A DNA stretch of 64,000 bases from the NCBI RefSeq assembly GCF_036365525.1, contig NW_027142279.1:992001-1056000 (forward strand). Direction: 5' to 3'. The position numbers and the translations under genes are program-made. The notes beneath the pieces were generated by a model, which searched no databases, was not told the DNA's origin, and worked only from the letters and a program-made list of their open reading frames with translations. Source of the DNA: Heterodontus francisci (taxonomy: Eukaryota). Positions 25,451-57,097 of this stretch are shown here, piece by piece; positions within the stretch are counted from its first letter, which is position 1, and each line of letters starts with the position of its first letter.

Positions 25451-25457
25451 TTGCCCG

Positions 25458-26720
25458 GAGGAGGTTACAGAGATAGGGAGGAATGTTGGGGCTGGAGGAG
25501 GTTACAGAGAAAGGGAGGGTTGTCAGGCGGGAGGAGGTTACAGAGATAGGAAGGGTTGTAGGGGTCTGGAGGAGGTTACAGAGAGAGGGAGGCTTCTTGG
25601 GTCTGGAGGAGGTTACAGAGAAAGGGAGGGTTGTCGGGCAGGAGGAGGTTACACAGATAGGAAGGGTTGTAGGGGCTGGAGGAGGTTACAGAGATAGGGA
25701 GGGATGTTGGGGCTGGAGGAGGTTACAGAGAAAGGGAGGGTTGTCGGGCGAGAGGAGGTTACACAGATAGGAAGGGTTGAGGGGCTGGAGGAGGTTACAG
25801 AGATAGGGAGGGATGTTGGGGCTGGAGGCAGTTACAGAGATAGGGAGGGTTGTAGGGGCTGGAGGAGGTTACAGAGATAGGGAGGGTTGTTGGGCTGGAG
25901 GAGATTACAGTGATAGGGAGGGTTGTTGGGGCTGGAGGAGGTTACAGTGATAGGAAGGTTTGTAGGGGCTGGAGATGGTTACAGAGATAGGGACGTTGTT
26001 GGGGCTGGAGGCTGTTACAGAGATAAGGGGCTTGTAGGGGCCGAAGGAGGTTACAGAGATAGGGAGGCTTGTTGGTTCTGAAGGAAGTTACAGAGATAGG
26101 GAGAGTTGTCGGGATGGAGGAAGCTACAGAGATAGGGAGGGTTGTAGGGGCTGGAGGAGGTTACAGTGTTAAGGAGGGTGGCAGGGTCTGCAGGAGGCTA
26201 CAGAGATGGGGATGGTTGTCGGGCTGGAGGAAGCTACAGAGATAGGGAGGGTTGTAGCGGCTGAAAGAGGTTACAGAGATAGGGATGGTTGTTGGTGCTG
26301 AAGGAAGTGACAGAGATAGGGATGGTAGTCGGGCTGGAGGAAGCTACAGAGATAGGGAGGGTTGTAGGGGATGGTGGAGGTTACAGAGATAGGGAGCATT
26401 GTAGGCTGGAGGAGGTTACAGAGATAGGGAGGGTTGTACGGGATGGACGAGGTTACAGAGATCGGGACGGTTGTAGACTGGGGGAGGTTACAGACATAGC
26501 GTTGGTTTTCGGGGCTGGAGGTCATTACAGAGATCGGGATGGTTGTCGGGGCTAGAGGAAGTTACAGAAACAGGGAAGGTTGTCGGAGTTTGGAGGAGGT
26601 TACAGATGTCGGAAGGGTTGCATTATCTTATGGAGGTAGCAGAGATAGGGAGGGTTGCATTACCTTGAGGAGATTGCTGTGATAGGGAGGGCTGTAGGAG
26701 CTGCAGGAGGTTACAGAGAG
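25458..26720. repeat. 37-bp satellite (ggaggttacagagatagggagggttgtaggggctgga)n, L2-derived
   Basis: Tandem monomer read directly; reverse complement resembles L2 3' segment at ~30985-31030. Confidence 0.93.
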
Positions 26721-29771: not shown

Positions 29772-32700
29772 ATGTGGACTCTGCTGATCATTCTGGGTTA
29801 CCTGAGTGAGTAACTTTCATTCTCGACAAAGTTGACCCCCAGTACAACTGGAACAAGCTGTGTTTATTCAAACCGTTATATAGAATAATCTCCCAAGATG
29901 TTGCACAGAAATCTGATGGAAGAAATGTCTGACAGGGCAGGGAAGGAGATGATTGGAGGGCTAACTGTTAGTTTAAAAGAGCAGACGGAGGTGGAGAGGC
30001 AGAAAGGTTTAGGAGGCTGGACATCTTGAAGCCACATCAGACACTGCTGGAGGAAAGGGAGTGGAGGGAAGTTCTACAGGAGGCTTGGGTCAGAGAAACA
30101 GAGAGTTGGTGAAGATTACAGAAATGAGGTGGGAGAGGGTGGAGAGGTCATGAAAGAATTTGAACAGGAAGATGGAAGTTGTACATCAAAGGCGTTTGCA
30201 GCTGTGAACCAATGTGGGTCAGAGAGCACAGGGGTGATGTGTGACTTAAACTTTCTGCAAGATAACATGCAACAGCAGTGTGTTGGAGGAGACCTGACTT
30301 CTGGAAAGTGGAAGCTGGGAGGCTGGCCAGGAGTGGATTAGAAGATTTGATTCTCTAGAAGGTAGAGGGTTTTTGGTAGAGGATTGGCTGAGGCAAAATC
30401 AGTGATGGTGGATATTACGGAGGTTGTAATTGGATGTCCTTGTGATGAGGAGGCTACAGGGAAGGAAGCTGGGCACAGTCAGAAGCTGATGAGAAATTGG
30501 AGAGGGACAAGATAGATTCTCGGGGTACGCTAGAGGTAACAGTGCTGGAGTGCGTAGGGAAGACATTGCAGGAGGTTCTCTGGCTGAGACTAGACTGGGT
30601 TGAGTGGAAATAGGCCAGAGCAGTTCCACCCAGCTGGACATGGAAGGAGAGGTGTTGGCGATGGATAGTGTGGTGAATTGTGTCAAAGACTGCCGACAAT
30701 TCGAGAAGGATGATCAGAAACGGTATTCCTGACTTGGCTCTTGCAGCTTCACTGCTGCTCAAACCCTTTACCAGTTCTTTGGTACCTCTAGACTTGACTA
30801 TTCCAAAGATCTCCTGGCTGATCTCTCACATTCCACCTTCTGTACATCTTGGTCATCCAGTATGATACTGCCCAAGTCCCGTTCACCTTTCATCTCTGTG
30901 CTCACTGACCTGCACTGGCTCCCGGTTCAGCAAGGCCTGGATTTCAATATTCTCACAATCGTTTCCAGATCCTTCTATCACCTCGCCGTTCCCTACCGCT
31001 GAAATCATCTCCAGCCCCACAACCCTCGGAGATCTCTGTGCTCCTCTAATTCAGGCCTCTTGAGTATTCCCGATTCGAATCCCTTCCACTATTGGCAGCT
31101 GTGCCTTCACCTGCCGAGGCTTAACGCAAGGGAATTCTCTCCCTCAACTTCTCCGTCTCTCCACCTCTCTTTCATCCTTTCAGACACTCCTTAAAACCTA
31201 CCTCTTTGACATAGCATTTGGCCACCTGCCCGACCAGCTGCTTCTGTGGATCGGTGTCAGTTCGGGATGGTAACACACCGATGAAGTGCTTTGGGACATT
31301 TTATTACATCAAAGGCAGTACATAAATGCAGGTTGTTGTTGGTTTTGAGACTACACGTTCCCTCTCCAGGACCCACCAGTCACACTGGGTCGCTTGTGCT
31401 CCACCTGGCAGTTCTCGCTCCTCCTCCACTTTACATCTTTCCAACTGGGATGAAGTGAAGCTGAGATATTTACTGCTTTCTGCTACCTGAGAGCTGGTGG
31501 TTAATCTAGAATAGGGAGGACTGTCTGTGAGCAGTGAGTTAGAGGGGGAGGCTGAGCTGGGAGACAGATGGAAACCCAATTTAGAGAAGGAGGACATTTT
31601 CCAGCTTTAATCTGGGGGGTTTTGACCAGGGCGGAGGGTGAAACTGAGATTATTGGTATTTTGGGAGGGTACAAGGCGCTGTTTAACATTAACTGTACTT
31701 TATATTAACATTAAACATCTTTCTGTCACTCAGTCACAGACTCCACACTCACTGACCCGTGTGTAAATCACACAGTCCTGGACCAGCCCTGGAGGAGCAT
31801 CGATTGTGATGTCACTGTGGGCTCCGGTCAGGAGAAGTGTGATGATAATCTTGCTCAAGGATGGTACAGATTTAAAAGGTAATGTAAAGGAACAAATTCT
31901 GGGTAAATCAGTTAATGAGGGAGGAGTAATGGATTTCCCCCAGTTTCTGGCACTATCTGTTGTTACCAGTCTCTCTAACAGTTAATATTTACCATCAGTT
32001 CAGGGACTGACTCTGTGATTAACTGTTTCAGTTCTGGTGGATGGAAGATTCCGGACACTGTTGTCCCAGATTTTCACTGCTCCACACGTGCCACAGGCTG
32101 GTTACAGGGTAATTTCCGTCTTAAAAATATCAGATTTACATTCACTGTCCAGCACTGTTCACGTGGGTTACCTTCTTCAATATTTATAAACTCTCATTTC
32201 AGGTTCCCATCCCAGTGTGGGACAGGGGGAAGTAACGAGGACAGTTTGTTTTAACAAGGCTGGAAATCGCTGTCACTGGACCCAGGAAATAAAGATCATA
32301 AACTGCAGCAGTTATTTTGTTTATGAGTTGAAGCCTCCACCCGACTGTAACGCTGTTTATTGCACAGGTAGATTGCTGTTTGTATATGGTGCAGATGGGT
32401 GATTCTGGGATGTCCCGTGTCACCCATGGGAATGAGACAGTTTACTCACTGCCCTCCTTTTTGTAAGGGACACAGTGAATAAAGGATCTGTAAAACAGAG
32501 TGAACTCTTCACTAAAACTCTAGGGAACTGAAACAGACGCTCGCTGTCTGGAGAGAGGGCTGGCATGTCTGGGCAGTATTCTGTCAGGTCTGCAATTGAG
32601 GAGATTCAGGTTTTCTGGTGAGTGTCAGACACAGCAGCAGGATCCTGACAGACTCTATGTGAAGGGCAGTCACTCTCACCTCACCTCTTGAGTTCAGCTC

Positions 32701-35700
32701 TTTTGTCCATGTTTGAACCACACTGTAATGAGGTCAGGAGCTAAGTGACCCTGGCGGAACCCAAACTGACCATCACTGAACAGGTAACTGCTGAGTAAGT
32801 ACCACTTGATAGCACTGTCAACAACACCTTCCATCATTTTACTGATGATACAGAGTAGACTGATGGGACGGTAATTGGGTGGGTTGAACTTGCCCTGCTT
32901 TGACTTGTCCTGCTTTTTATGCACAGGACATGCCTGGGCAGTTTTCCACATTGCAGGGTAGATGCCAGTGTTGTAGCTGTACACGAACAGCTTGGCTAAG
33001 GATGCAACAAGTTCTGGAGCACAGGTCTTCAGTACTACTTCCGGGATATTGTCAGGGCCCATAGCCTTTGCAGTATCCAGTGCCTTCAGTCATTTCTTGA
33101 TATCAAGCGGAGTGAATCGAATTGGCTGAAGACTGGCATCTGTGATGCTGGGGATTGCAGGAGAAGGCCGAGATGGATCATCAACTCAGCACTTCTGGCT
33201 GAAGATTTTTGCAAATGCTTCAGCCTTATCTTTTGCACTGATGTGCTGGGCTCCCTGATCATTGAGGATGGGGATATTTGTGGGGCCACCTCCTCCAGTT
33301 AGTTGTTTAATTGTCTACTGCCATTCACGACTGGATGTGGCAGGACAAGAAATACTGGAATCACTCAGCGGGTCTGGCAGCATCTGTGGAAAGAGAAGCA
33401 AAGTTAACGTTTCGGGTCAGCGACCCTTCTTCGGAACTCATTTGATCCGTTGGTTATGGGATCGCTTAGCTCTGTCCATCGCATGCTAATTATGCTGTTT
33501 GGCATGCAGATAGTCCTGTGTTGTAGCTTCACCAGGCTGACACCTCATTTTGAGGTATGCCTTGTGCTGCACTTTGCATGCCCTCCTGCACTCTTCATGG
33601 AACCAGGTTTGGTCTCCTGGCTTGATGGTCATGATCGAGTGGGGGATATACCGGACCATGAGGTTACAGATTGTAGTTGAGTACAATTCTGCTGCTGCTG
33701 TTGTTCCCACAGCACCTCATGGATGCCCATTGTTGTATTGCTAGACTTGTTTGAATCTATCCCATTTAGCATGGTGATAGTGCCACACAACACGATGGAC
33801 GGTATCCTCAATGTGAAGGTGGGACTTTGGCTCCACAAGGACTGTGCGGTGGTCACGCCCACCAAGACTGTCATGGACAGATGGATATGTGGCAGGCAGA
33901 TTGGTGAGGATGAAGTCAAGTATATTTTCTCCTCTTGTTGGTTCTGTCATCACCTACCGCAGTCCCAGACTAGCAGCTTTGTCTTTTAGGACACGGCTAG
34001 CTCGGTAAGGAGTGGGCTGCAGTGACTGAGAGGAGTGGTCTGCAGAGACTGAGGGGAGTGGGATGTAGTGACTGAGCGAATGAGATGCGGTGACTAGGTG
34101 GAGTAGGATACAGTGAATGTGGGGAGTGGGATGTAGTGACTGAGGGGAGTGGGGTGGAGTGACAGGGGAGTGGGAGGTAGTGACTGAGGGGTGTGGGATG
34201 CAGTGATTGAGCGGAGTGGGAAGTAGCGACTGAGGGGAGTGGGATACAGAGACTGAGGGGAGTGGGATACAGTGACTGAGCGAATGAGATGCGGTGACTA
34301 GGTGGAGTAGGATACAGTGAATGTGGGGAGTGGGATGTAGTGACTGAGGGGAGTGGGATGTAGTGACTGAGGGGAGTGGGATGTAGTGACTGAGGAGAGT
34401 GGGGTGTAGTGACTGAGGAGAGTGGGGTGTAGTGACAGGGGAGTGGGAAGTAGCGACTGAGGGGAGTGGGATACAGAGACTGAGGGGAGTGGGATACAGT
34501 GACTGACGGGAGTGGGATGTAGTGACTAAGGGGAGTGGGATGCTGTAATTGAGGGAAGTGGGATGTAGTGACTACTGAGTGTGATGTGGTAACTGAGGGG
34601 AGTAGGATGTAGAGAAGCGGGGAGTGAGGTGCAGTGACTGAAGGGAATGGTATAGAGTGATTCGGTGGAGTGGGTAAAGTGACATAGAGAAGTGGGATGC
34701 AGTGATTGAGGGGAGTGGGATGCAGTAATTGAGGGGAGTGGGATGCAGCGACTAAGGGGAGAGGGATGCAGTGACTGAGGGCAGTGAGATGTAGTGACTG
34801 AGGGGAGTGGGATGTAGTGACTGTGGGGAGTGGGATGTAGCGACTGATGGGAGTGGGTGCACTGACTGAGGGGAGTGGGTGCAGTGAGTGAGGGGAGTGG
34901 GATGCTGTAATTGAGGGAAGTGGGTGTAGTGACTGAGGGGAGTGGCATGCAGTGACTCAGGGGAGTGTGAATCAGTGACTGTGGGGATTGGGATACAGTG
35001 ACTGAGGGGAGTGGGGTACAGTGACTGAGGAGAGTGTGATACGGTAACTGAGGGGAGTGTGATCCCTTCCATTTATCATCACATTCTCCCCGGTTTCACT
35101 TGTCACTAGAACTTTTCCCAGTTCTGATGTAAGGTCACATATTAACATTAAACATCTTTCTGTCACTCAGTCACAGACTCTGCACTCACTGACCCGTGTG
35201 TAAATCACACAGTCCTGGACCAGCCCTGGAGGAGCAGCGATTGTGATGTCACTGGGTGCTCCGGTCAGGAGAAGTGTGATGATAATCTTGCTCAAGGATG
35301 GTACAGATTTAAAAGGTAATGTAAAGGAACAATTTCAGGGTAATCTAGTCAATATGGGCAGAGTAAGGGATTTCCCCCAGTTTCTGGTACTATCTGCTGG
35401 TACCAGTCTCTCTAACAGTTAATATTTGCCATCAGTTCAGGGACTGACTCAGTGATTTTTGTTTCAGTTCTGGTGGATGGAAGATTCCGGAGACTGCTGT
35501 CCCAGATTTTCACTGCTCCACACATGTTACAGGCTGGTTAAATGGTAATTTCAGCCTTGAGAATATCAGATTTACATTCACTGTCCAGCACTGTTCACAT
35601 GGGTTACAGTCTTCAATATTTATAAACTCTCATTTCAGGTTCCCATCCTAGCGTGGGACAGGGGGAAGTAACACGGACAGTTTGTTTATCCTGGGGTAGA

Positions 35701-38700
35701 AAACACTGCGACAAGGTCCATGAGATAAAGATCAAAAACTGCAGCAGTTACTTCGTTTATGAGTTGAAGTCCCTGTTTTATTGCGCTGCGTATTGTACAG
35801 GTACATTCATGCTTCTATATCATCCAGAGGGTGATTCTGGGATGTCCCGTGTCACCCACAGAAATGAGACGGTTTACTCACTCCCCTCCTTATTGTAAGG
35901 GACACAGTGAATAAAGGATCTGAAACACAAAGTGTACTTCACTGAAACTCGAGGGAACTGAACCAGACTCTGCTGTCTCTGTCTATCAGGCACTCTGATC
36001 CCTGCAGTGTTCATGGCTCACGTCAGGTCCCCACTGCAGTGCTGGGCACCTCACACTCCCTCTCCCAGAAGCAATGTTCGCGAGGAGTTGGATAGGATCT
36101 TCGAGGGTTTGATAAAGATGAAAATCTGACACTGTCTGGACTAGAGAACTATATAAACGAGCTCTTCGGGTTTTCTCCACTCTGCCCTCTTCCTTTATTA
36201 CAGATCCAGAGACTGTCGCAACTGAGGAACCCGAGGAACAAACAACTCGAGAATCCACTAGGGGATCATTGTCTACCCCAGCGGTGTCTGGAACATCAGG
36301 TATCCCCCTTGTGGGTTGCATTCGAAACAGATTCCACACCCAATGTTACACCATAGAAGATCAGTCCTCGAGATCATCCAGTCTCTTACTGAGGGAAGTG
36401 GGATGGAGTGACTGCGGGAAGTGGAAGGGCGTGAATGAGGGAAGTTGGATGGAGTGACTGAGGGGTGTGGGATGGGGTGACTGAGGGAAGTGGGATGGAG
36501 TGACTGAGGTGAGTGGGATGGGGTGACTGAGGGGAGAGGGATGTGGTGACTGAGGGGACTGGGATGCAGTGACTAAGGAGAGTGGGATGATGTAATTGAG
36601 GGGAGTGGAATACATAGACTGAGGGGACTGGGATGTAGTGACTGAGGGGAGTGGGATATAGTGACTGAGAGGAGTGGGATGCACTGACTGAGGGGAGTGG
36701 GATGCAGTGACGGAGGGGAACGGGATGCAGTGACTGAGGGCAGTGGGATGCAGTAATTGAAGGGAGTGGGATGTAGTGACGGAAGGGAGTGGGATGCAGA
36801 GGCTGAGGGGATTGGGATGCAGTGACTGGGGAGTGGAATGCACTGATTGAGGGGTGTGGGATGCAGTGACTGAGGGGAGTGGGATGCAGTGACTGAGGGG
36901 AGTGGGATGCACTGATTGAGGGGAGTGGGATGCAGTGACTGAGAGGAGTGGGATGCAGTGGCTGAGGGGAGTGGGATTTGGTGACTGAGGGGAGTGGGAT
37001 GTGGTGATTGAGGGGAGTGGGATGCAGTGGCTGAGGGGAGTGGGATGCAGTGACTGAGGGGAGTGGGATGATGTAATTGAGCGGAGTGGGATGCAGTAAT
37101 TGAGGGAAGTGGGATGTAGAGACTGAGGGGAGTGGAATGCACTGATTGAGGGGTGTGGGATGCACCGATTGAGGGGAGTGGGATGCAGTGACTGAGAGGA
37201 GTGGGATGCTGTGGCTGAGGGGAGCGGGTTGCAGTGACTGAGAGGAGTGGGATGCACTGATTGAGGGGAGTGGGATGCAGTGACTGAGAGGAGTAGGATG
37301 CAGTGGCTGAGGGGTGTGGGTTGCAGTGACTGAGGGGAGTGGGATGGGGTGACTGAGGGGAGTGGGATGTGGTGACTGAGGAGAGTGGGATGCAGTGACT
37401 GAGAGGAATGGGATGGAGGGACTGAGGGGAGTGGCATGATGTAATTGAGGGGAGTGGGATGCAGTGATTGAGGGGAGTGGGATGATGTAATTGAGTGGTG
37501 TGGGATGTCGTGACATGGGCAGTGCGATGCATGGACTGAGTGGAGTGGGATGTAGTGACTGAGGGAAGTGGGATGCAGTGACTGAGGGGTGTGGGATGTA
37601 GAGACCTAGGGGAGTGGGATGTAGAGACTGAGGGGAGTTGAATGTGGTGACTGAGGGGAGTGGGATGGGGTGACTGAGGGTAGTGGGATGCAGTGACTGA
37701 GGGGAGTGGGATGTAGAGACTGAGGGGAGTGGGATGTAGTGACTGAGGGGAGTGGGATGCAGTGACTGAGGGGAGTTAGATGCAGTGACTGAGGGGAGTG
37801 GGATGATGTAATTAAGGGGAGTGGGATTAAGTGACTGAGGGGAGTGCGATGCATTGACTAAGGGGACTGGGAAGTAATGATTGAGGGCAGTGGGAAGAAG
37901 TGATTAGGGGAGTGGCATGTAGTGAGTGAGGGCAGTGGGATGTAGAGACTGAGGGGAGTGGGATGTAGTGAGTGAGGGGAGTGGGATGTAATGACTGAGG
38001 GGAGTGCGATGTTGAGACTGAGGGGAGTGGGATGTAGAAACTGAGGGGAGTGCGATGTAGAGACTGAGGGGAGTGGGATGTAGTGGCTGAGGGGAGTGGG
38101 ATGTAGTGACTGAGGGGAGTGGGATGTAATGACTGAGGGGAGTGCGATGTTGAGACTGAGGGGAGTGGGATGTAGAAACTGAGGGGAGTGCGATGTAGAG
38201 ACTGAGGGGAGTGGGATGTAGTGGCTGAGGGGAGTGGGATGTAGTGACTGAGGGGAGTTGGATGCCGTGACTGAGGGGAGTGGCATGTAGTGACTGAGGG
38301 GAGTGGGATGTAGAGACTGAGGGGAGTGGGATGCAGTGACTGAGGGGAGTGGGATGTAATGACTGAGGGGAGTGCGATGTTGAGACTGAGGGGAGTGGGA
38401 TGTAGAAACTGAGGGGAGTGCGGTGTGGAGACTGAGGGGAGTGGGATGTAGTGGCTGAGGGGAGTGGGATGTAGTGACTGATGGGAGTTGGATGCCGTGA
38501 CTGAGGGGAGTGGGATGTAGGGACTGAGAGGAGTGGGATGTCGTGAATGAGGGGAGTTGAATGCCGTGAATGAGGGGAATGGGATGTAGAGACTGAGGGG
38601 AGTGCGATGTAGAGACTGAGGGGAGTTGGATGCCGTGACCGAGGGGAGTGAGATGTAGAGACTGAGAGGAGTGGGATGAGGTGACTGAGGGGAGTGGGAA

Positions 38701-41700
38701 ACAGCGACTGCGGGTAGTATGAGACAGTGACTGAGGGGTGTGTGATACATTCACTCAGGGAGTGTGATACAGTGACTGAGGGGAGTGTGATACAGTGTCT
38801 GAGGGTAGTATGATGCAGTCACTGAGGGGTGTGTGATACAGTCACTCAGGGAGTGTGATACAGTGACTGAGGGGAGTGTGATACAGTGTCTGAGGGTAGT
38901 ATGATGCAGTCACTGAGGGGAGTGTGATGCAGCGACTGAGGGTAGTGTGATGCAGTGTCTGAGGGGGATGTGATACAGTGACAGAGGGTAGTGTGATACA
39001 GTGACTCAGGGAGTGTGATACAGTGACTGAGGGGAGTGTGATACAGTTACGGAGGGGAGAGTGATGCACTGACTGAGGTGAGTGGGACACAGTGACTGAA
39101 GGGAGTGTGATACAGTGACTGAGGGTAGTATGATACAGTCACTGAGGGGAGTGTGATACAGTGTCTGGGGTTAGTATGATACAGTCACTGAGGGGATGTG
39201 ATGCAGCGACTGAGGGTAGTGTGATACAGAGTCTGAGGGGGATGTGATACAGTGACTGAGCGTAGTGTGATACAGAGTCTGAGGGGGATGTGATACAGTG
39301 ACTGAGGGTAGTGTGATACAATGACAGAGGAAGTGTGATACAGTGACAGAGGGGAGTGTGATGCAGTGTGTGAGGGGAGTGTGATGCAGTGACTGAGGGG
39401 AGCATGATACAGTGACTGAGGGGTGTGTGATACAGTCACTCAGGGAGTGTGATACAGTGACTGAGGGGAGTGTGATACAGTTACGGAGGGGAGTGTGATA
39501 CACTGACTGAGGGGAGTGGGATACAGTGACTGAAGGGAGTGTGATACAGTGACTGAGGGGTGTGGGATGCAGTGACTGAGGGGAGTAGGATACAGTCAGT
39601 GAGGGGAGTGGGATGCAGCGAATGAGGGTAGTGTGATATAGTGAGTGAGGGGAGTGCGATACAGTGTCTGAGGGGAGTGTGATACACTGACTGAGGGGAG
39701 TGGGATATAGTGACTGAAGGGAGTGTGATACAGTGACTGAGGGGACTGCGATACAGTGTCTGAGGGGAGTGTGAGACACTGTCTGAGGGGAGTGTGAGAC
39801 ACTGTCTGAGGGGAGTGGGATACGGTGAACTGAAGGGTGTGTGATACAGTGACTGGGGGAGTGTGATACAGTGACTGAGTAGAGTGTGATACACTGTCTG
39901 AGGGGAGTGGAATGCAGTGACTGAAGGGAATATAATGCAGTGACTGAGGGGATTGTGATACAGTGAGCTGAAGGGAGTGCGATGCAGCGACTGAGGACAG
40001 TGTGATACAGCGACTGACGGGAGTGGGATACAGCGACTGAGGGGAGTGTGATACAGTGACTGAGGGGAATGTGATAAAGTGACTGAGGTGAGTGTAATGC
40101 AGTGACTGAGGGGAGTGTGATAGAGACTGAGGGCAGCATGATGCTCAAACTCAGGAATCCGAGGAACAATCGACTAGAGAATCTACTGAGGTTTCATCCA
40201 CTACCCACCGGGCTCTGGAAGCTAAGGTATCTGCTTTGTGGGGTTATCATCGCAGAATCATGGAATCAAAGACTGGTTACGGCACAGAAAGTTTCTGTTC
40301 AGCCCATCTTCACCGTGCCAGCTCTCTGGCAGTGCAACTCACCTACTCCCACTCCTGCCATTTTCCTGTCGCCCTGCAGATATTTTCTGCCAGGACAATT
40401 ATCCAATTCCCTTTTGAAAGCCTCAATTGAACCTGCCTCCAGCACACTCTCATGCAGTGCATTTCAGATCCTAACCACTCACTGTGTGAAAAGGTTTCCC
40501 TGCCTCTGTTGTGACTTTTACCACTCACCTAAAACCGTTGCTCTCTAGTTCTGGATCCTCCCACCAAGAGGAACAGTTTTTCCCTGACTACTCTGTCTAG
40601 TTCCCTCTTGATTATGAACAACTTGCTCAAATCTCCTCTTCATCGTCTCTTCTCCAGGGAGAACAGCCCCAGCTTCTCCGATCTATTCATGTCACTGACG
40701 TCCCTCATCCCGGGAACCATTCTGGTAAATTTTCTCTGCACCCTCTCGAATACCTTAACATCCCTCCTAAGTATTGACCGCTCTCTCGACCTGTCTTGCC
40801 ACCTTCAATGATTTGTGCACATGTCCCCCCCAGGTCCCTCTGCCCCTGCATCTCCTTTAGAATTGTATCCTTTATTTTATATTGCCTCTCGTTCGTCTGA
40901 CCAAAAATGAATCACTTCACAATTCTCTGTGATAAATTTCATTTGCCAGTGTCTGCCCATCCCACCAGCCTGTCTATAACCTCCTGACGTCTATTGCTAT
41001 CCTCCTCACAGTTCACAATACTTCCAGGTTTTGTGTCATCTGCAGATTTTGAAAGTGTGCCCTGTACGCCCCAGTCGATGTCATTAATTTACATCAGGAA
41101 CAACAGTGGTCTGAGCATTATTAGAGAGCAAAACATAGATGCACAGAGAATTAGGAGGGACAGATAACAAAGGAGTCGATAAGAGTATCGTATGAGACGG
41201 GGACAGTGTAAGAGGAAAGGTGATGAGCTGTAAATTCAGTTTAATGTGTGTGTATGTGAATGCAATGAGAGTGGTAAATAAGGTTGTTTAACTTCAGGCG
41301 CAGATAGCCACGTGGAAATATGATGTTGTGGCAATTACAGGGTCCTGGCTCGAAGAGGGGCAGGACTGGGTAGTGAATATTCCTGACTACAAGGTGTTCA
41401 GGAAAGAGAGGGGAGGAAGGAAAGGAGGAGGGGTATCAGTATTGATTAAGGGGAACATTACAGTGCTGTTTTCTTTTCTCACTCTTGTTCACACTCATTC
41501 CAGATCTCCCTTACTCTTTTCTGTCTCACACCTGTCGCCTTCCCTCCTTTTCTCTCACTCCTGCTCTCTGTTGTTCTCTGACTCCACTTTCCCCCTGTCG
41601 TTTCGCTGATCATTTTGATAATCTCCTGAGTTTTCTCTGTTAGTTTTTGTTTCTTGTTGGAGTAGTAACTGATTCTGCAGCCGATGATATCTTGTGTCCC

Positions 41701-43700
41701 CCCTCAGTAAAGGCTGGTATACATTGATTCAGTGTGTCGAGGGAGTTAGATTACATACGAGAGGAGGTTCTGTGTTGAAACACTTCTGTCCACTCATCCA
41801 GCGTTCTGAATCCCAGTGAAATTCCTCTTGTCTTTATTTGACCCTCACAGACTCGGGGATTCCGTCTACTCCCGAGGAACCTCCCGACTCCCAGCCTGTT
41901 TCTGATGATGGTGGGAACATTTCAGATTCTCCACATTTCAGGAATATTAAATCCCTCCTCCTGTCTCAGTCTGGCACAAATATATCAGGACCGAGGGCCT
42001 CCAAACAGCTGTGTGATCGTTCTGTGTAGGGAAACCCATCGTTCTCACTCTCTCTCTGTCTCTCTCTCTGTCTTGTCTGTGCTGTCAGACAAGAATTGCA
42101 GTCGCTTGTGTTCAGTATGACTGGATACATTGGGAAACACAGAAACGTAAACGTCCAAAAATTCCTTCAGAAATATCTTTGAGCTTCTATCTCACATCCC
42201 TCTCTCTGTAACTCTCAGTTTTATCTCTGTCTCTCTGTTTCTCCTTTATCTGCCTTTCACACGCATATATAAATATATTTCATTTCTGTAACCGCCTCTC
42301 TCCTATGTGGTTCTCAGTTTCTCCAGCTCCCTCTTTCACCTCACTCTGTCTCCCACTCTCTCTGATGTTCTGTCTCCCTGTCTGTCTCTCTGACTCTCAC
42401 TTTCTCTCTCTCTGTCTCTCTCACAGATGCTCTTTGTCTGTCTCTCTGTCTTTGTCTTTGTCAGAGGGACAGAGAGCATCAGAGAGAGAGAGAGAGAGAG
42501 TGAGAGTGATAGACAGAGACAGAGAAAAGGGCAGTGAGACCGGAGTAAACACGGAATGCAAATGATCTGGGGAGATGGAACAAGGAGGCAACAGAGAAGA
42601 GAGTGCAGGATAGAGGATGATAACACAGAGAGGTCAGATTATAGACAAGACGAGTTGAGATAGAGAGAATAACAGAGACAGATGAACAAACGAGTGGATG
42701 ACAAACTGGAGGAAAGAGAGTTTAAATTAGAGAGGAGAGATCATTCGAAATACGTCCCGTGCCCTGTGCTAAACTCTGGGTGTGTTCAACCTGTTGATGT
42801 TGTGACTGTTGTGTTTAGATACTAAATACAAGAGGATTAATGTGAAGATCACTTCAATGACTGATCTGGATGATGAAACTGCAAAGAGAATCGTTGTGGA
42901 GAGGGTGAGAGACTGCACTGGACTGAGGAGAAACACGGGAGACAACAGATCCTCCCTCTCACTGTCTGTATTCACTGAATGGGAACTCCAGGTCATTATT
43001 TAAACAGCTCTAATTCCCCCTCTGCTTATCTTCTGGTCCCCCAGATCAGGCTTGTGAGGGGTTGAATGGGCTTCCTCCTGAGCCTGTGTGAAAGGCTGGA
43101 GAGGGGGTGAGGGGGCTGAATGGCCTTCTCCTGTTCCTGTGTAATAACTCGAACGAGGGGCTGAATGGCCTCCTCCTGTTCCTGTGTAACAGACTCGAGG
43201 GGATGAATGGCCTCCTCGTTGTACGGTAACCTCTCTCTGATCTTCCCTCTCACTCTCCCCATTCTCTCTTTATGTCCTTTCTATCTCTGTCTCTTTCTCT
43301 GCCTCGCTCACCCAATCTGTATTTCTCTTTCTGTGTCTTGCTTTCTGTCTCTGTCTGTCCCTCACTGCATCTCTGACGACCTCTCGCTCTCACACCCTCT
43401 GTTTCTCTACCTCTGTCTCAATCCCTGTAGCTCTCCCACCCTCCCTCACCATCTCTCCCTCTATCTGAGTATCTTTGCCTCTCCCTGTATCTCACTGTCT
43501 TGCCCCCACCCTCTCTCCCGATCTCTGTCTGTATGCTCTCTGTCTATTTCTATTCACTCCTCCCCTTGCAGTAATACTCATCGTTTCTCCTCTCTGCGAT
43601 GCAGATGAAGCACATGTTCCAGGATCAGTGTCCACACACGAAGCTCGAATTGGATCCAGAAGACGTTCAGTGCTCGGCTAGTGAGCCTGTGGAAGTGTGA
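29772..43700 (+). CDS. GP2/uromodulin/OIT3-like D8C-domain secreted protein, paralog B (380 aa; signal peptide, 2 x D8C, S/T/E/P stalk, C-terminal module; no ZP domain)
   Basis: Exons 29772-29805, 31734-31878, 32032-32108, 32203-32367, 35171-35315, 35468-35544, 35639-35800, 36204-36299, 41851-41910, 42819-42904, 43605-43700. All AG/GT-bounded, phases chain, total 1143 nt without internal stop. Signal MWTLLIILGYLITDSTLT; D8C motifs DPC.N.T.LD.PWRS, GWYRF, C.T..TGWL.GSHP, RTVC, NC..YFVYEL, YCT. Confidence 0.85.
29880..31340. mobile_element. L2 LINE fragments: minus ~29880-30720, plus 3' end ~30730-31340
   Basis: Minus LLELSAVFDTIHH; plus LTDLHWLPV-like segment and tail aaggcagtacataaatgcaggttgttgtt. 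Confidence 0.75.
31734..32367 (+). CDS. D8C cassette 1 (three exons) of gene B
   Basis: TDSTLTDPCVNHTVLDQPWRSIDCDVTVGSGQEKCDDNLAQGWYRFK / SSGGWKIPDTVVPDFHCSTRATGWLQ / GSHPSVGQGEVTRTVCFNKAGNRCHWTQEIKIINCSSYFVYELKPPPDCNAVYCT. Confidence 0.92.
32665..34005 (-). mobile_element. CR1-group LINE remnant (endonuclease end to RT start)
   Basis: EPTRGENILDFILTN, GPDNIPEVVLKTCAPEL, NYRPISLL, QFGFR. Confidence 0.88.
34010..35065. repeat. 23-bp G-rich satellite array between the two D8C cassettes
   Basis: (agtgactgaggggagtgggatgt/gc)n. Confidence 0.95.
35171..35800 (+). CDS. D8C cassette 2 (three exons) of gene B
   Basis: TDSALTDPCVNHTVLDQPWRSSDCDVTGCSGQEKCDDNLAQGWYRFK / SSGGWKIPETAVPDFHCSTHVTGWLN / GSHPSVGQGEVTRTVCLSWGRKHCDKVHEIKIKNCSSYFVYELKSLFYCAAYCT. 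Confidence 0.92.
36385..40145. repeat. 23-bp G-rich satellite array, two subtypes (gtgggatg to ~38700, then gtgtgatac)
   Basis: Direct reading; right end matches the right end of array 528-6350. Confidence 0.97.
40146..40226 (+). pseudogene. Dead truncated stalk pseudo-exon, paralog of 6351-6432
   Basis: Same satellite junction and TAA; additional 1-bp deletion. Confidence 0.8.
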
Positions 43701-45414
43701 AGGTGTTTGGACATGTCAACAAGCACCCGACACGTGTGATCCAGTCTCTGTGTGTTTTACATCCTCACTCAATCACTGTACCATCTTATCTTCACCTTGT
43801 TTAACTCAAGGAAATTGTCAGCAAAGGGTTAATCTCCGACTAGAAGTATGCTAATGTTATACTGTAATTGGTGTTTCTTTATACCGCAGGGGTGTGGGAG
43901 CTTTAAGCTATTGCTTTGTTAAATAGAGAAGTACGATCCCATTTGTATACAGTGACCACTGGTCAGCTGAACCCAGACTAACCTGACAGCTCTGGCCACT
44001 TTCAGGATGAAGTGATCTCAGGTTTAATGAGGGAGTTTCTTTAAAGATCTACCATTGAGTAGAGGTCCCTAAGCTTCATGGAGCTGTCAGCACTGAGAAT
44101 AGGGGCAAGGAAAACAGTTCGTCCTTGTCCAAGGAGAACCTCAGGGTAGATAACATCTTTTAAATTGAGGGTTCATGCAGAATGGGGGATCGGTTGATGC
44201 TGAACTTTGCAGAATCAAAATATATTGAAAAGGAAAGCTTTCATTGAGTACAAAGCATTTATGTGTGGCATATGTCAAATGTTTAATAACAAAGGAAGGG
44301 AGTTGTACTGAGCTCAGGAACCTAATGCTGACAACACTCCATCTCAATAACACCTCTGTGAATGCTTCCATTGTCTCTGCTCTGCCACACTGCTTGTCTA
44401 ACATCCAATACTGGATGAGCAGATATTTTCTCCTACTAAATATTGGGAAGACTGAAGCCATTGTCTGTGGTCCCCGACACAAATGTCATTCTTGGACCAC
44501 TGACACCATCTCTGGTACCTGTCTGAAACTGATCAAGACAGTTTTCAGCCTTTGTTGTTGTGTTTGACCCCGAGATGAGTTTTCGACCACATATCCACAC
44601 CATCACCAAGACAGTCCATTTTGCACCTCCATACCATCTCTCGACTCCGCCCCTGCTTCAGCTCATCTGCTGCTGAAACCCTAATCCGTGCCTCTGTTAC
44701 CTCCAGACTGGACCATTCCGATACTCTCCTGGCCAACCGCACATCCTTCACACTTCCTGATCAGATCCTCATACAAACATTTGCTGCCTGTGTCTTAACT
44801 CACTCCGAACCCTGTTCACCCATAACCCCTGGAACTATTGCCATTCACTGACTCCCTGCTCCTCTCCAATTTCCCAATATTAACATCCTGACCAGTCTGT
44901 TGAACTGTTGTGAAATGATTCATTGGTCACAGCTCTCTAGTGTAACAATGTAAAACGTCTGCAATAAGTGAACATGGCTGTGTATCTTCCATTGATGGAC
45001 ATTCAAACAAGGAGAGCTGCAGCATGGAAAGGCTTTTTAACGTGTTTGACTTCCTGACCACCCAGTGTGATTGCAAATCTGATTGTAAACTGTGTGTTTA
45101 AAGTTTTATTGCATTCTCTGTCTGCTAAATATATCTATGAATATTGAACCTGACCGTCTCAAGAAGCTGATTGATTTTGCTGGAATGGCTTTACCATCTG
45201 ATCATGGAAATCCAGTTTTTTTTTTGTTCTGGGAGGGAATACTCACTGTTAAATGATTGCTGAGTGCTGAGATCAGAAGGGATGTGACTGTACGTGGTGG
45301 GACTGCCCAGCATTCCCCAAACCTTGTGCTACTCCATTCTATTCTGGTCTGTGCTTCCACCCTGGATAATCCAGCTCATTCAAGGCCTGTCAGATCAAAA
45401 TGAGAAATCCTGAC

Positions 45415-46990
45415 CTTTCAAAAGGCATTTGATACAGTTCCACACATCAGACTTGTGAGCAAACATGTAGCTCTTGGAATGCATAGGACGGTAGCAACAT
45501 GGATTACGAAATTGGCTGAGTGACAGGAAACAGAGAATAGTGGATAATGGATGTTTTTCGGGCTGGAGAAAGGTTTGTAGTGGACTTCCCCAGGGATCAG
45601 TGTTGGGACCCTTGCTTTTCCTGATATATATTAATGTCCTAGACCTCGGTGTACAGGGCACAATTTCAAAATATGCAGATGAGACGAAACTTGGAAGCAT
45701 TGTGAACTGTGAGGAGGATAGTGTAGAACTTCAAAAGGACATAGACAAGTTGGTGGAATGGGCGGACAAGTGACAGATGAGGTTCAATGTGGAGAAATTT
45801 GAAGTGATTAATTTTGGTAGGAAGAACATGGAGAGACAATATAGAATCGAGGTTACAATTCTAAAGGGGGTGAAGGAGCAGAGAGACCTGTGTGTATCAG
45901 TGCATAAGTCATTGAAGATGGCAGGACAGGTTGAGAGAGTGGTTGATAAAGCATACAGTATCCTGGGCTATATTAATAGGGGCATAGATTACAAGAGCAA
46001 GGAAGTTATGTTGAACCCGTATAAGACACTAGTTTGTCCTCAGCTGGAGTATTGCCTCCAATTCTAGGTGTTGCACTTGAGAAAAGATGTGAGGGCATTT
46101 GAGAGAGTACAGACGAGATTCACAAGAATGGTTCCAGGTATGAGGAATTTCAGTTATGAAGATAGATTGGAGAAGTTTGGACTGTTTTCCTTGGAGAAGA
46201 GAAGGCTGGGAGGTGATTTGAGAGAGCTATTCAAAATCATGAGGGGCCTGGACAGAGTAGACACTGTTCCCACTCGTGAAATTATCGAGAACGAGAGGGC
46301 ACAGATTTAAAGTATTTGGTAAGAGAAGCAAAAGTGACATGGGGAAACAAGTTTTCATGCAGCGAGTGGTTAAGGTCTGGAATGCGCTGCCTGGGAACAT
46401 GGTGGAGGCAGATTCAACTGAAACATTTAAAATAAAATTAGACAGTTACATGAAATGGAAGAATTTGCAGGGTTACAGGAAGAGGCCGGGGGAGTGGAAC
46501 TGAGGGAGTTGCACTTTCAGAGAGCCGGTGCAGACACGATGGGCCGAATGGCCTCCTTCTGCGTGGTCACAATTCTGTGATTCTTTGATTATTATGAGGA
46601 ATGTTTGAAGAGGTTGGGCAGATACTCATTGGAGTTTAGAAAAATGAGCCACGTAAGATTCTGAGGGGGCTTGACTGGGTAGATGCTGAGTGGATGTTCC
46701 TTCTCGTTTGGGAATCTAGAACGAGGCGTAACAATTTCAGAATAAGGGGGTCTCCCATTTAAGACGGAGATGCGGAGGATATTTTTCTCTCAGAGGATTT
46801 GTGAGTCTGTGGAACTCCGTTCTCTGGAGAGCAACGGAGGCTGGGTCATTGAATATATTCAAGCCTGAGTTTGACAGATTTTGATTCTACAAGGGTGTCA
46901 TGGTTATAGAGGGCAGAAAGGAAAGTGGAGTTAAAGCTGCAATCAGATCAGTCATGAACTTATAGAATGGCTGAGCAGGCTCGAGGGGCC
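45415..46990 (+). mobile_element. CR1 LINE remnant (uninterrupted paralog) followed by a second CR1 3' end
   Basis: ORFs 45540-46503 GLPQGSVLGP, SKYADETK, LEYCLQF, QRVVKVWNALP. Confidence 0.9.
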
Positions 46991-47699
46991 GAAAGGCCTA
47001 CTCCTTGCTCCCATTTCTTATAACCTTACTGACTGCCCAATTCAATATCAGGGTCGTTAAAGTCTCAAATCATCACATAATTTTTTTCACCCCTCAGTTA
47101 TTTCTTTACAGCTCTGCTCCTCCATGTCCTTCCTGCTCTATGGCAGCTGATAAAATACCTGCAAAGTAAAAATGTTTTTCAGAAGATGCTCACAGTCGGA
47201 GAACAGTGGACTGTTCATATCAGAGGCACAGACAAGATCTCCCACAGGCCACAGGTACACATTCAGCAACATATGCAAACAACAATGAGCAAAGCCAGAG
47301 AGCTGGGAGAAGGCTTTTGTAGGCAGGACACGCGACATTGTGAGGCCCCTGAGCAGATATCAATGTCCCTGCTGCTGTGCCCCTGACATTGGGACTGCAA
47401 TGAATTTGCATTTACAGTCAAGCATTGCCCAGATTACATTGCAGAAAGATGAATGAATTCTGCCCACTTGAGGGAGTTATTGAGAGAACCCTCGCCCACG
47501 ACTGACACATTGCACCAATGGGAAAATACTGCAGATGCTGGAACTCTGAAACACAAACAGAATATTGAGTAGGTCTGGCAGCATTTGTGGAGAGAGAAAC
47601 AGAGTTAACGTTTCAGCTTGGTCAGCCTTCTTCAGAACGGCAATGGTGAGAGATGGTACAGATGTTAATAAAGTACAGAGGCAGGGAAAGGGACAAAAC

Positions 47700-49470
47700 A
47701 GCAATTTATAATACTCTCGCACCTTTAACGTAATAAAACCTGCCAAGGCTCTTCACAGGAGCATTATAAACACAGTATGAAACTGAGTGACATAAGGAAA
47801 GATTCGGTCAGACAATCAAAATCTCAGTCAAAGAGGTAAGTTTTAAGGAGAATTTTAAATTGAAAAGTGAGGTGGAGAGGCGGAGAGGTGTAGTGAAGCA
47901 ATTCCAGAGCTTAGGCCGCAGGCAACTGAAGGTGTGACCATCAATGGTTGAACAATTAAGGTCGGGGATGCTTAAAGGGCCAGAATTAGAGGAGTGCAGA
48001 GATTCCGGAAGGTTGTAGAGGCTGGAGGACGTTACAGCGATAGGGAGGGCTGTAGGTGCTGGTGAAGGTTACAGAGAGAGGGATGGCTGTCGGAGCTGGT
48101 GGATGTTACAGAGATAGGGAGGGTTGTAGGAGCTGGTGGAGGTTAAAGAGATAGGGAGTGCTGTTGGAGCTGGTGGAGGTTACAGAGATAGGGAGTGCTG
48201 TAGGAGCTGTTGGATATTACAGAGATAGGGAGGGTTGTAGAGACTGGTGGAGATTACAGAGATAGGGAGGGTTGTTGGAGATGGTGGAGGTTACAGAGAT
48301 AGGGAGGGTTGTGGAGACTGGTGGAGGTTACAGAGATAGGGAGGGTTGTAGGAGCTGGAGGAGGTTAACGCGATAGGGAGTGTTGTAGAGACTGGTGGAG
48401 GTTACAGAGATAGGGAGAGCTGTACGAGCTGGTGGATGTTACAGAGATAGGGTGGGTTGTTGGAGCTGGAGGAGGTTAACGCGATAGGGAGGGTTGTAGA
48501 GACTGGTGGAGGTTACAGAGATAGGGAGAGCTGTACGAGCTGGTGGAGGTTACAGAGATAGGGAGGGTTGTAGAGACTGGTGGAGGTTACAGAGATAGGG
48601 AGAGTTGTAGAGACTGGTGGTGATTACAGAGATAAGGAGGATTGTTGGAGCTGGTGGAGGTTACAGAGATAGGGAGGGCTGTAGGAGCTGGAGGAGGTTA
48701 ACGCGATTGGAAGGGTTGTAGAGACTGGTGGAGGCTACAGAGATAGGGAGGATTGTTGGAGCTGGTGGAGGTTACAGAGATTGGGAGGGCTGTAGGAGCT
48801 GGAGGAGGTTAACGCGATAGGGAGGGTTGTAGAGACTGGTGCAGGTTACAGAGATAGGGAGGGCTGTAGGAGCTGGTGGATGTTACAGAGATAGGGAGGG
48901 CTGTAGGAGCTGAGGAGGTTAACGCAATAGGGAGGGTTGTAGAGACTGGTGCAGGTTACAGAGATAGGGAGGGCTGTAGAAGGTCAACGCGATAGGGAGG
49001 GGAAGGGCCATGGGGGATTTGAGGACAAGGACGAGAAACTTAAAATGTGGATGTTGCTTGACTGGGAGACAATGTAGGGCAGTGAGAGCAGGAGTGACAG
49101 GGGATCAGGACTTGGAGCAACTTAAGACACAGGCAGAAGAGTTTTAGATGACCTCAGGTTTACAGAAATTGGGTGAGCATCAGGACTGCCTTGACATTGT
49201 CAAGTCCAGAGCTGACAATGTCTTGAATGAGGGTTTCAGCCACATTTCAGCTGAAATTGGGGCGCGTTCGGGTGATCTTACAGAGGTGGAAATGTGCAGC
49301 GTTAGTGATGGTGCCTACATGAGGTCAGAAGCGCATCTCGGCGTCAAATGTGACACCAGGATTTCGAACAGACTGGCTTAAACTCAGATCGCTGCCGGGG
49401 AGAGAGGTAGAGTCAGTAGTTAAGGAATGGAGTTTGGAGCGGAAACTGAAAACAGTAGCTTCAGTTATGA
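47700..49470 (-). mobile_element. L2 LINE 3' region containing an internal 37-bp satellite expansion
   Basis: L2 sequence flanks the array on both sides (..ccagaattagaggagtgcagagat.. and ..gggccatgggggatttgaggacaagg..); minus VRNPGVTFDAEMRF. Confidence 0.8.
48010..49000. repeat. 37-bp satellite array
   Basis: (ggaggttacagagatagggagggttgtaggagctggt)n. Confidence 0.95.
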
Positions 49471-49473
49471 GGG

Positions 49474-50472
49474 CAGTACTGAGGGAGTGCTGCACTGTCG
49501 TAGGGTCAGTACTGAGAGAGTGCTGTACTGTCAGAGGGTCAATACTGAGGGAGTGCTGCACTGTCAGAGGGTCTGTACTGAGGGAGTGCTGCACTGTTGG
49601 AAGGTCAGTACTGAGGGAGCGCTTCACTCACAGAGGGTCAGTACTGAGGGAGTGCTGCACTGTTAGAGGGTCAGGACTGAGGGTGTGCGGCACTGTCGGA
49701 GGGTCAGTACTGAGTGAGTGCTGCACTGTGACAGGGCCAGTACTGAGTGAGTGCTGCACTGTCAGAGGGGAAAACTGAGGGAGTGCTGCACTGTCGGAGG
49801 GTCAGTACGGAGGGAGTGCTGCACTGTCCGAGGGTCAGTACTGAGTGAGTGCTGCACTGTCAGAGGGGCTAACTGAGGGAGTGCAGCACTCTGCGAGGGT
49901 CAGAACTGAGGGAGTGCTGCACTGTCAGAGGGACAAACTGAGGGAGTGCTGCACTGTTAGAGGGTCAGTACTGAGTGAGTGCTGTACTGTCAGAGGGTCA
50001 GTACTGAGGGAGTGCTGCACTGTCAGTGGATCAGTACTGAGGGAGTGCTGCACTGTGAGAGGAGCAGTACTGAGTGAGTGCTGCACTGTCAAGGGTCAGT
50101 ACTGAGTGAGTGCTGTACTGTCAGAGGGTCAGTACTGAGGGAGTGCTGCACTGTCAGAGGGTCAGTACTGAGGGAGTGCTGCACAGTTATTGGGGCAGTA
50201 CTGAGTGAGTGCTGCACTGTCAGAGGGTCAGTACTGAGGGAGTGCTGCCCTGTCAGAGGAGCAGTACTGAGTTAGTGCTGCACTGTCAGAGGGTCAGTAC
50301 TGAGTGAGTGCTGTACTGTCAGAGGGTCAGTACTGAGGGAGTGCTGCACTGTGAGAGGAGCAGTACTGAGTGAGTGCTGCACTGTCAAGGGTCAGTACTG
50401 AGGGAGTGCTGCCCTGTCAGAGGAGCAGTACTGAGTGAGTGCTGCACTGTCAGAGGGTCAGTACTGAGGGAG
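49474..50472. repeat. 33-bp satellite (cagtactgagggagtgctgcactgtcagagggt)n, Deu-SINE-derived
   Basis: Tandem monomer; same motif inside the SINE at ~54850-55136. Confidence 0.93.
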
Positions 50473-50650
50473 TCCATAAAGCCCCTCCGTCGACCCTGTT
50501 ATGCAGGAACAGCAGGAGGCCCTTTCAGTCCCTCTGTCGGGACTGTTACGCAGGCACAGCAGGAGGCCCATTCAGCCCCTCTGTCGAGCCTGTTACACAG
50601 GAACAGGTGGAGGCCCATTCATCCCCTCTGTCGAGCCTGTGCATGGTACC

Positions 50651-55500: not shown

Positions 55501-55539
55501 CACAGTGTTTGAGAAAGCGGATCCGCAGCTGCAAAAACC
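55501..55539 (+). promoter_or_regulatory. 23-RSS
   Basis: CACAGTG - tttgagaaagcggatccgcagct (23) - GCAAAAACC. Confidence 0.97.
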
Positions 55540-56606: not shown

Positions 56607-57058
56607 ATGTATCTGTTCCTGGCTCTGATAATCCTGGTTCAACGTAAGTGCCAAATAGAAAGATTATCAGTCAGAACCTTCCTCTCCTCTCCCTGTCTTT
56701 CTTTCATTCCCAGAAATTCCCTGTTTACTGATCTCCTCCTCTCTCCATCTCTCTCCCAGATGTGAACTCACAGACTATCCACCAGATTCCCGCCGCTGTC
56801 TCCAGATTTCCCGGGAAAGGAGTGGAACTGATGTGCACTGTGGAGGGGAGCAGCAGTAACCTCAACATGTACTGGTACAGACAATACCTGGGGAACGAGC
56901 CGCTGTTGATGTTTTACTCCAATACTGCTAACTATGTGGATCCAGAGGGGACGGTGGATGGTTTCACCGCCGAGAGACAGACTGATTCCCAGTTCAACGT
57001 GGAGTCCTCCAGCCTTCGGGAGAATCACTCGGCCGTGTATTTCTGTGCCTGGAGTCTT
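56607..57058 (+). CDS. TCR beta V segment, TRBV30-like; intact ORF but defective RSS heptamer
   Basis: Leader 56607-56643 MYLFLALIILVQ + gtaagt; V exon 56760-57058 VNSQTIHQIPAAVSRFPGKGVELMCTVEGSSSNLNMYWYRQ..LMFYS..SAVYFCAWS. Confidence 0.93.
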
Positions 57059-57097
57059 CAGACTGACTCAGAGAGATGGTGCAGTTCAACAAAAACC
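57059..57097 (+). promoter_or_regulatory. 23-RSS with CAC>CAG heptamer change
   Basis: CAGACTG - actcagagagatggtgcagttca (23) - ACAAAAACC. Confidence 0.9.

Follow-up and report, generated by a model that had tools for sequence, protein, structure and literature searches.

A Heterodontus francisci gene with tandem D8C domains, an acidic stalk and neither a ZP module nor a membrane anchor

A gene for a predicted secreted protein with two tandem D8C domains lies at 29772–43700 on the plus strand of a 64,000-nucleotide (nt) stretch of the shark Heterodontus francisci genome (NCBI RefSeq assembly GCF_036365525.1, contig NW_027142279.1, positions 992,001 to 1,056,000 of the forward strand; the whole stretch is called the window below, and all coordinates are those of the window). 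The gene is intact and transcribed. The encoded protein starts with a short signal peptide, continues with two D8C domains in tandem (the heads) and an acidic, Ser/Thr/Pro-rich stalk from one or two exons, and ends in a C-terminal module of ∼50 residues (the tail). The D8C (or D10C) domain is that of the mammalian proteins GP2 and uromodulin (UMOD); the fold is known, but neither this architecture nor its expansion has been described, and the databases carry the members of the family under borrowed or placeholder names. These names ("GP2-like", "uromodulin-like", "OIT3-like" and "uncharacterized") are much what an initial annotation, made from the sequence alone, had foreseen for automated labeling. 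No paper on this elasmobranch D8C–stalk–tail family was found in the literature on D8C, uromodulin or GP2-like proteins in sharks, skates and named genera.

Structure and transcription of the gene

The gene model has 11 exons with AG acceptors and GT donors at all borders and compatible phases; the exon lengths sum to 1143 nt, which is 380 codons and a stop, or 360 codons if exon 9 is left out. Exon 1 (29772–29805, plus strand like all exons that follow; 34 nt) starts with the ATG at 29772, encodes the signal-peptide hydrophobic core MWTLLIILGYL and ends in phase 1 at the donor GA/GTGAGT. The N-terminus that it encodes is identical in P0167, a 360-amino acid NCBI protein of H. francisci, and is conserved in relatives from Carcharodon, Mustelus and Chiloscyllium. 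Two D8C cassettes of three exons each follow. Cassette 1 comprises exons 2–4 (31734–31878, 32032–32108 and 32203–32367) and cassette 2 comprises exons 5–7 (35171–35315, 35468–35544 and 35639–35800); both enter and leave in phase 1, and they are near-identical, in frame with each other and in frame with the downstream exons. The motifs DPCVNHTVLDQPWRS..., GWYRFK, SSGGWKIP..., GWLxG, SHPSVGQGEVTRTVC..., NCSSYFVYELK... and YCT occur in this order in each cassette. Cassette 1 is also placed at 31734–32367 by tblastn of P0167 and of a second NCBI protein, P0009 (XP_067884563.1, discussed below), and in the same kind of search cassette 2 corresponds to P0167 residues 140–268 at 96–98% identity.

The stalk is encoded by exon 8 (36204–36299; 96 nt, phase 1 to phase 1), which is delimited by its splice sites and reads DPETVATEEPEEQTTRESTRGSLSTPAVSGTS; it aligns with the stalk exons of an upstream paralog, and tblastn of P0009 and P0167 gives its location as well. 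Exon 9 (41851–41910; 60 nt or 20 amino acids, phase 1 to phase 1) is an optional stalk exon reading SGIPSTPEEPPDSQPVSDD, which is 100% identical to P0009 residues 393–413 and missing from the NCBI model P0167. Exon 10 (42819–42904; 86 nt, phase 0 at its end), supported by splice sites and by an RNA joint, encodes the first half of the C-terminal module, TKYKRINVKITSMTDLDDETAKRIVVER. The terminal exon 11 (43605–45082) is coding from 43605 to 43700, where it reads MKHMFQDQCPHTKLELDPEDVQCSASEPVEV and then the stop codon (43698–43700), and RNA contigs extend it through a 3′ untranslated region (3′UTR) to ∼45082.

Two annotated proteins served as stand-ins in all whole-protein comparisons, and the exons of the window were searched singly. 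P0167 comprises exons 1–8, 10 and 11 with three residue differences and, judged by sequence, is the near-identical annotated product of this gene. P0009, a 472-amino acid "uncharacterized protein" of H. francisci, is the closest match to exon 4 in a scan of 1.8 billion representative proteins, in which this exon alone finds 1136 proteins at E ≤ 0.001; it shares with this gene the signal peptide, the pair of D8C domains and the last three exons, has several stalk repeats, and is a paralog having exon 9 plus extra stalk exons.

Transcription was followed in two RNA runs, X1 and X2, of one sample, whose contigs were compared with 40134–46100. The joint of exon 10 to exon 11 (42904/43605, with GT..AG ends) is present at a depth of 85 in X1 and 10 in X2, and overlapping contigs cover 43604–45082 without a break. 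These contigs differ from this copy at 0–5 positions and from the upstream paralog, over the same pieces, at 7–30, so the transcripts derive from this gene. Exon 11 is the terminal exon, with the stop and ∼1.4 kb of 3′UTR, and no RNA joint from it to further exons was found among the contigs over this region. Exon 9 has neither depth nor a joint in the contigs of either run. One contig of 340 nt ends on exon 10, and its 252 upstream letters match nowhere in 40134–46100, which is consistent with exon 8 spliced straight to exon 10 as in P0167. Because P0167 skips exon 9 and the contigs show no depth there, the main product is probably the 360-residue protein of ten exons. The 11-exon, 380-residue model of the initial annotation is therefore reproduced in all its borders, its phases and its total, but its exon 9 is optional. 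Farther upstream, sampled 31-mers of cassette 1 are present at a fraction of 0.42 in X1 and 0.31 in X2; the ceiling for a spliced copy should be about 0.49, the share of such words that lie wholly within exons.

Two side observations concern the 3′ end. A minor alternative donor at ∼42991, 87 nt past exon 10, joins 43605 in X2 (at depth 6; the main joint has 10), and its use would insert 29 residues in frame inside the tail module. There is no AATAAA or ATTAAA within 2.6 kb past the stop (43701–46300), though RNA cover ends near 45082; the polyadenylation signal is either non-canonical or located away from the end of the RNA cover.

Absence of a ZP module and of an anchor

The initial annotation had proposed D8C domains without a ZP module, and profile searches bear this out: Pfam D8C_UMOD matches exons 4 and 7 of the window and P0009, and no ZP match was obtained with them. 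P0009 is matched twice (85.7 bits) and has no other Pfam domain. Scanned singly, exon 4 reaches 26.0 bits and exon 7 reaches 20.7 bits against a cut-off of 27 bits that is set for the whole domain; exons 2, 3, 5, 6 and 9 and the frame spanning exon 11 (43575–43697) have no Pfam match when scanned in this way, as is expected of such short pieces. No ZP or EGF domain was found by Pfam in P0009 or in five elasmobranch relatives, and the identical scan does detect ZP-N or ZP-C in multi-D8C proteins of corals and loach. The precomputed Pfam assignments of ∼100 elasmobranch relatives likewise list PF23283 only. When 150 D8C proteins, ZP-bearing ones included, were compared with the window by tblastn, no homologous exons were found beyond those given here.

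An anchor is absent as well. No transmembrane segment and no glycosylphosphatidylinositol-type tail was found in this protein or in 13 relatives; in none of these 14 family members does a 19-residue segment beyond the signal peptide reach a hydropathy of 1.0, and the C-terminal 20 residues of each are hydrophilic. The protein has no ZP-N/ZP-C followed by a C-terminal anchor and cleavage site. Its start conforms to a signal peptide of the type M-W/R-T/S-LLLILG-x-L placed directly before the D8C domain, with exons 1 and 2 reading MWTLLIILGYL and (I)TDSTLTDPC, and proteins of Heterodontus, Carcharodon, Mustelus, Chiloscyllium, Rhincodon and Pristiophorus begin in the same manner. The earlier proposal of a secreted, ZP-less and anchor-less product thus agrees with the signal peptide, with exon 11 being terminal in RNA, with the Pfam results and with the lack of a hydrophobic tail in all 14 members.

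The D8C heads

The heads have the D10C globular fold according to Pfam, phmmer, Foldseek and VIA-align. The phmmer comparison with the GP2 chain of PDB entry 7p6r gives E 2.5e-30. Structure comparisons used the predicted model of P0167, which has a mean predicted local distance difference test score (pLDDT) of 79 and ∼90 over the heads; Foldseek gives a template modeling (TM) score of 0.83 against 7p6r and 0.89 against 9nu1 with a root-mean-square deviation (rmsd) of 1.8–2.0 Å, and VIA-align against the human GP2 decoy module gives Z 18.9 and rmsd 1.9 Å over 124 aligned residues.

The ten-cysteine, five-disulfide pattern of the fold is incomplete. When aligned to GP2 and UMOD, the shark heads have other residues in place of C3 and C6 and therefore lack the C3–C6 disulfide; they retain the remaining eight cysteines and with them four of the five disulfides (C1–C8, C2–C9, C4–C10 and C5–C7). 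Many shark domains have an extra, lineage-specific cysteine pair in the loop after C1. The 43 family domains contain 7–11 cysteines each, and this pair accounts for the two modes, at 8 and 10. Head 2 (in 35171–35315) and many relatives have the extra C-x3-C pair complete. Head 1 (in 31734–31878) has nine cysteines, the second member of the pair being missing (VG for GC), and one of its cysteines is possibly unpaired.

The decoy of GP2 and UMOD is bipartite, consisting of a β-hairpin and the D10C domain, and a high-mannose glycan is presented in the groove between them (PMC8930769). The shark protein has no disulfide-stapled hairpin (Cx–Cy): only ∼7 cysteine-free residues (TDSTLTD) separate the signal peptide from C1, and head 2 begins 8 residues past the last cysteine of head 1. 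The statement in the initial annotation that the D8C domain itself is the decoy for the bacterial adhesin FimH was therefore imprecise, since the decoy is hairpin plus D10C (PMC8930769) and the shark proteins have no hairpin.

These differences bear on the possibility that the protein is purely a glycan decoy, in which mannose-specific bacterial adhesins would be caught by a high-mannose N-glycan on the heads, in the manner of GP2 N65 and UMOD N275, and the stalk would hold the heads out in solution. The D10C fold is closely conserved, and both heads carry an N-H-T sequon at the exact position of GP2 N65, two residues after C1. Such a sequon is, however, present in only 17 of the 43 domains, and an equivalent of UMOD N275 in none of them; a sequon of the UMOD N232 type occurs in 10 of the 43, head 2 included. 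Further, the hairpin that is absent here is what shelters the glycan in GP2 and UMOD and keeps it in the high-mannose state (PMC8930769), and there is no ZP filament to give a polyvalent display of the UMOD/GP2 type. On balance a pure glycan decoy appears unlikely.

Variability of the heads and a possible function

Per-column entropy over 43 distinct elasmobranch domain instances shows a nearly invariant framework. The entropy peaks fall in the loop after the first extra cysteine, in C5–C7 and just beyond it, and in the residues preceding C9. In human UMOD the C5–C7 region (βE, loop and βF) is the epitope for immunoglobulin light chains, and it is held rigid by the C5–C7 and C3–C6 disulfides (PMC8930769).

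We consider it about an even chance that the product is a soluble, bivalent extracellular binding protein with the variable C5–C7 loop as its ligand face and with N-glycans possibly helping. On this reading the protein would be released soluble and glycosylated and presumably would not polymerize in the manner of UMOD and GP2. The heads would contact extracellular ligands, plausibly microbial ones; the C5–C7 loop is the most variable part and no longer has the C3–C6 disulfide, which in mammals keeps it rigid. A lectin-decoy activity may come in addition from N-glycans at the GP2 N65-like sequons, which both heads have. The stalk would serve as a spacer, and the C-terminal module might function in attachment or assembly.

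The two cassettes give some information on how the heads have diverged. Their third exons (32203–32367 and 35639–35800) are 78% identical, and the surrounding introns are 88–93% identical. Between cassettes 1 and 2 the proportion of synonymous differences in this exon (pS) is 0.46 and that of nonsynonymous differences (pN) is 0.17, against a divergence of 0.07–0.12 in the flanking introns. Simple positive selection on the third exon was considered and rejected, because its synonymous divergence far exceeds the divergence of the flanking introns. The high synonymous divergence argues for a mosaic history rather than a burst of replacements, and it looks as if conversion homogenizes the cassette flanks and not the third exon.

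Several points weigh against a soluble binding protein with a variable ligand face. The divergence of exon 4 from exon 7 points to a mosaic or gene-conversion history and not to clean positive selection. The role given to the variable loop is argued, by analogy, from one human interaction. For exons 1–8, the evidence of a single spliced transcript comes from the NCBI model and from words shared with the RNA runs.

Stalk and C-terminal module

Residues 273–302 of the stalk have a pLDDT below 50 in the P0167 model and are predicted to be disordered. The tail encoded by exons 10 and 11 is modeled with one confident helix (residues 319–337) and extended segments on either side. A profile built from the family finds this ∼50-residue module in 41 of 253 collected proteins, all of them from elasmobranchs, and in 36 of the 41 it is followed by just 0–20 residues; a word-based search with the tail alone found four Heterodontus proteins only, so the profile search reached further. 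A fold search gave a best Z of 4.2, with Z 3.2 for the SEA domain of MUC1 and 2.8 for that of MUC16, all within the noise of the tool, and the best score in the ESM Atlas (0.78) is uninformative. No fold is therefore assigned to the tail, and it does not qualify as a SEA domain (a full α/β sandwich of ∼120 residues), as Pfam has no match on the tails of the whole proteins and the structural scores lie within noise. A two-copy complex prediction for the tail (P0167 residues 298–360) scored 0.10 against a mark of 0.32, which speaks neither for nor against dimerization.

The stalk and tail might instead suggest a structural glycoprotein of a secretory matrix, a mucin-like part of mucus or granules in which the heads serve for packing or for contacts with host proteins. 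Stalk length is highly variable among the relatives, some of which are automatically named "mucin-5AC-like"; GP2 itself resides in granules, and UMOD is bound by OIT3 (PMC8930769); and the weak matches of the tail to MUC1 and MUC16 would fit. Yet a stalk of only 32–52 residues is hardly a mucin, the SEA-like scores are inside the stated noise of the tool, and recognition families are the more typical setting for a large, lineage-specific expansion with variable loops. A matrix role of this kind seems improbable.

Upstream paralog, repeats and genomic setting

The 3′ part of a second gene of this family lies upstream at 89–11124 on the plus strand. It includes a stalk exon (89–184), a satellite (530–6338), a relic stalk exon at ∼6348 and intact exons 9, 10 and 11 (9297–9356, 10240–10325 and 11029–11124), all read from the sequence and the last of them ending in a stop, in agreement with the initial annotation, which had a paralog ending at 11124. 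The exons of this copy were also located by tblastn of P0009 and of P0168, an NCBI protein that matches them at 96–100% identity. By self-BLAST the two loci are 95% identical over 4.6 kb (8219–12829 and 40773–45412).

P0168 and P0169, which are NCBI isoform models of the paralogs, end in exons that match 11999–12214 and 47144–47383 at 97–100% identity. The exon at 11999–12214 appears to derive from a repeat, and no Pfam domain or hydrophobic segment is present in either stretch. These terminal exons probably represent read-through or mis-spliced forms.

The suggestion of a multicopy family is supported: in addition to the two genes of the window, there are proteins on at least five Heterodontus contigs and ∼100 D8C-only proteins from ∼20 elasmobranch species, which range from Heptranchias to Leucoraja with many per genome. 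Paralogs within Heterodontus are 79–92% identical to this protein and the best matches from other species 61–67%, a gap in sequence identity that indicates lineage-specific expansion or concerted evolution.

Satellite DNA fills introns in both gene copies. Its 23-bp unit, approximately ACTGAGGGGAGTGGGATGCAGTG, occupies 34009–35063 in the intron between the cassettes (Tandem Repeats Finder: period 23, 46 copies) and 3.7 kb of intron 8 at 36388–40133 (Tandem Repeats Finder and self-BLAST), the same intron that carries it at 530–6338 in the paralog. In each copy one stalk exon has been truncated at its 5′ end by this satellite, leaving relics at 6348 and 40143. An alignment of the four stalk-exon copies identifies the relic of the present gene (40143–40230, plus strand) as a second stalk exon that lies outside the mRNA; its acceptor and first ∼20 nt have been replaced by satellite, it has a 1-nt deletion and a stop, and tblastn shows a frame shift there. 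Minus-strand open reading frames of up to 376 amino acids at 36361–40169 were rejected as genes, being reading-frame artefacts of the satellite; they are long because 3 × 23 = 69 nt. The intron between the cassettes also contains a LINE (long interspersed nuclear element) reverse-transcriptase fragment on the minus strand (32694–33062; Pfam RVT_1, 22.7 bits).

A locus so rich in satellites and LINE fragments, with one stalk exon destroyed by satellite and with paralog isoforms that end in repeat-derived exons, raises the possibility that the gene is a decaying by-product of segmental duplication, an unconstrained though transcribed copy amplified together with an array of V segments. The ratio of nonsynonymous to synonymous divergence between the cassettes is ∼1 for exons a and b, a value that is based on only 5–7 changes. 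Against this, none of the 11 exons is interrupted and their splice sites and phases are correct, spliced transcripts are present at moderate depth, both heads keep their core residues, and sharks from the six-gill and seven-gill groups through to skates share the architecture with its small tail. Decay of this sort is thus highly improbable.

The V segments lie downstream, where three open V-set exons on the plus strand (55188–55537, 56732–57127 and 60340–60987; Pfam V-set, 46–60 bits) end in ...YFCA or YYCV. Heptamer-23-nonamer recombination signals are found at 55501 and 60883, with further 23-spacer signals at 50961 and 52211. Judged by these exons and signals, the D8C genes are part of, or adjacent to, a V array of T-cell-receptor type that has the same orientation. 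More satellites are found between D8C genes and V segments, at 25457–26719 and 48007–48979, which have a common 37-bp unit, and at 49469–50473, which has a 33-bp unit.

This setting permits a more far-reaching proposal, that of a germline-diversified family of soluble recognition proteins whose genes multiplied in elasmobranchs together with T-cell-receptor V segments, in duplication units of the form "V + D8C", and in which diversity is focused in a C5–C7 loop freed by the loss of C3–C6 and is maintained against a gene conversion that makes the remainder of the cassette uniform. We regard the proposal as quite improbable; if true, it would mean that shark immunity has an unrecognized innate or humoral arm built on the uromodulin fold.

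Comparison with known D8C proteins

To our knowledge, the D8C/D10C domain of vertebrates has been known only within large proteins that have a ZP module or are rich in EGF domains, and the presentation of a glycan to bacterial adhesins from a polymer is the one role that we know to have been worked out for it. Elasmobranchs are the oldest living lineage of jawed vertebrates. In this lineage the fold is freed from the polymer and doubled, it has acquired a stalk as well as a small tail that is new, and it is present in dozens of copies per genome; the loop in which it varies corresponds to a protein-binding epitope of human uromodulin. If the members of the family are soluble recognition or decoy proteins, they would be a component of the barrier immunity of sharks and rays and would amount to a natural experiment on what the D8C fold alone can bind. 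Their placement within T-cell-receptor V arrays bears, in addition, on how that locus grows.

The closest counterparts are the D8C–stalk–tail proteins of other elasmobranchs. XP_041038352.1 of Carcharodon, XP_043533706.1 of Chiloscyllium and XP_055514227.1 of Leucoraja, like the Heterodontus paralog XP_067884563.1, have the plan described here; it consists of a signal peptide, one to four D8C heads, a Ser/Thr/Pro/Glu stalk and a terminal module of ∼50 residues, and these relatives vary only in the number of heads, the length of the stalk and the sequences of the loops. Outside this group, corals and sea anemones (Porites, Montipora, Oculina and Nematostella) have D8C-only and multi-D8C proteins, some of them with tandem D8C domains and no ZP module, as here, but these proteins are only 32–40% identical, do not have the elasmobranch tail, and many are partial or carry Ig (immunoglobulin), EGF or ZP-N domains. 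OIT3/LZP and VWDE also contain a D8C/D10C domain (PMC8930769), and several members of the shark family have been automatically named after them; OIT3, however, combines it with EGF domains and a ZP module and VWDE with a VWD domain and many EGF domains, whereas PF23283 is the sole Pfam match of the shark proteins. GP2 (PDB 7P6R/S/T) and UMOD (7PFP, 9NU1) share the D10C/D8C fold of the shark heads at 38–40% identity. They also possess a β-hairpin, EGF domains, a ZP module, an anchor and a cleavage site, none of which is present in the shark protein; it has in their place two tandem heads, a stalk and a lineage-specific tail.

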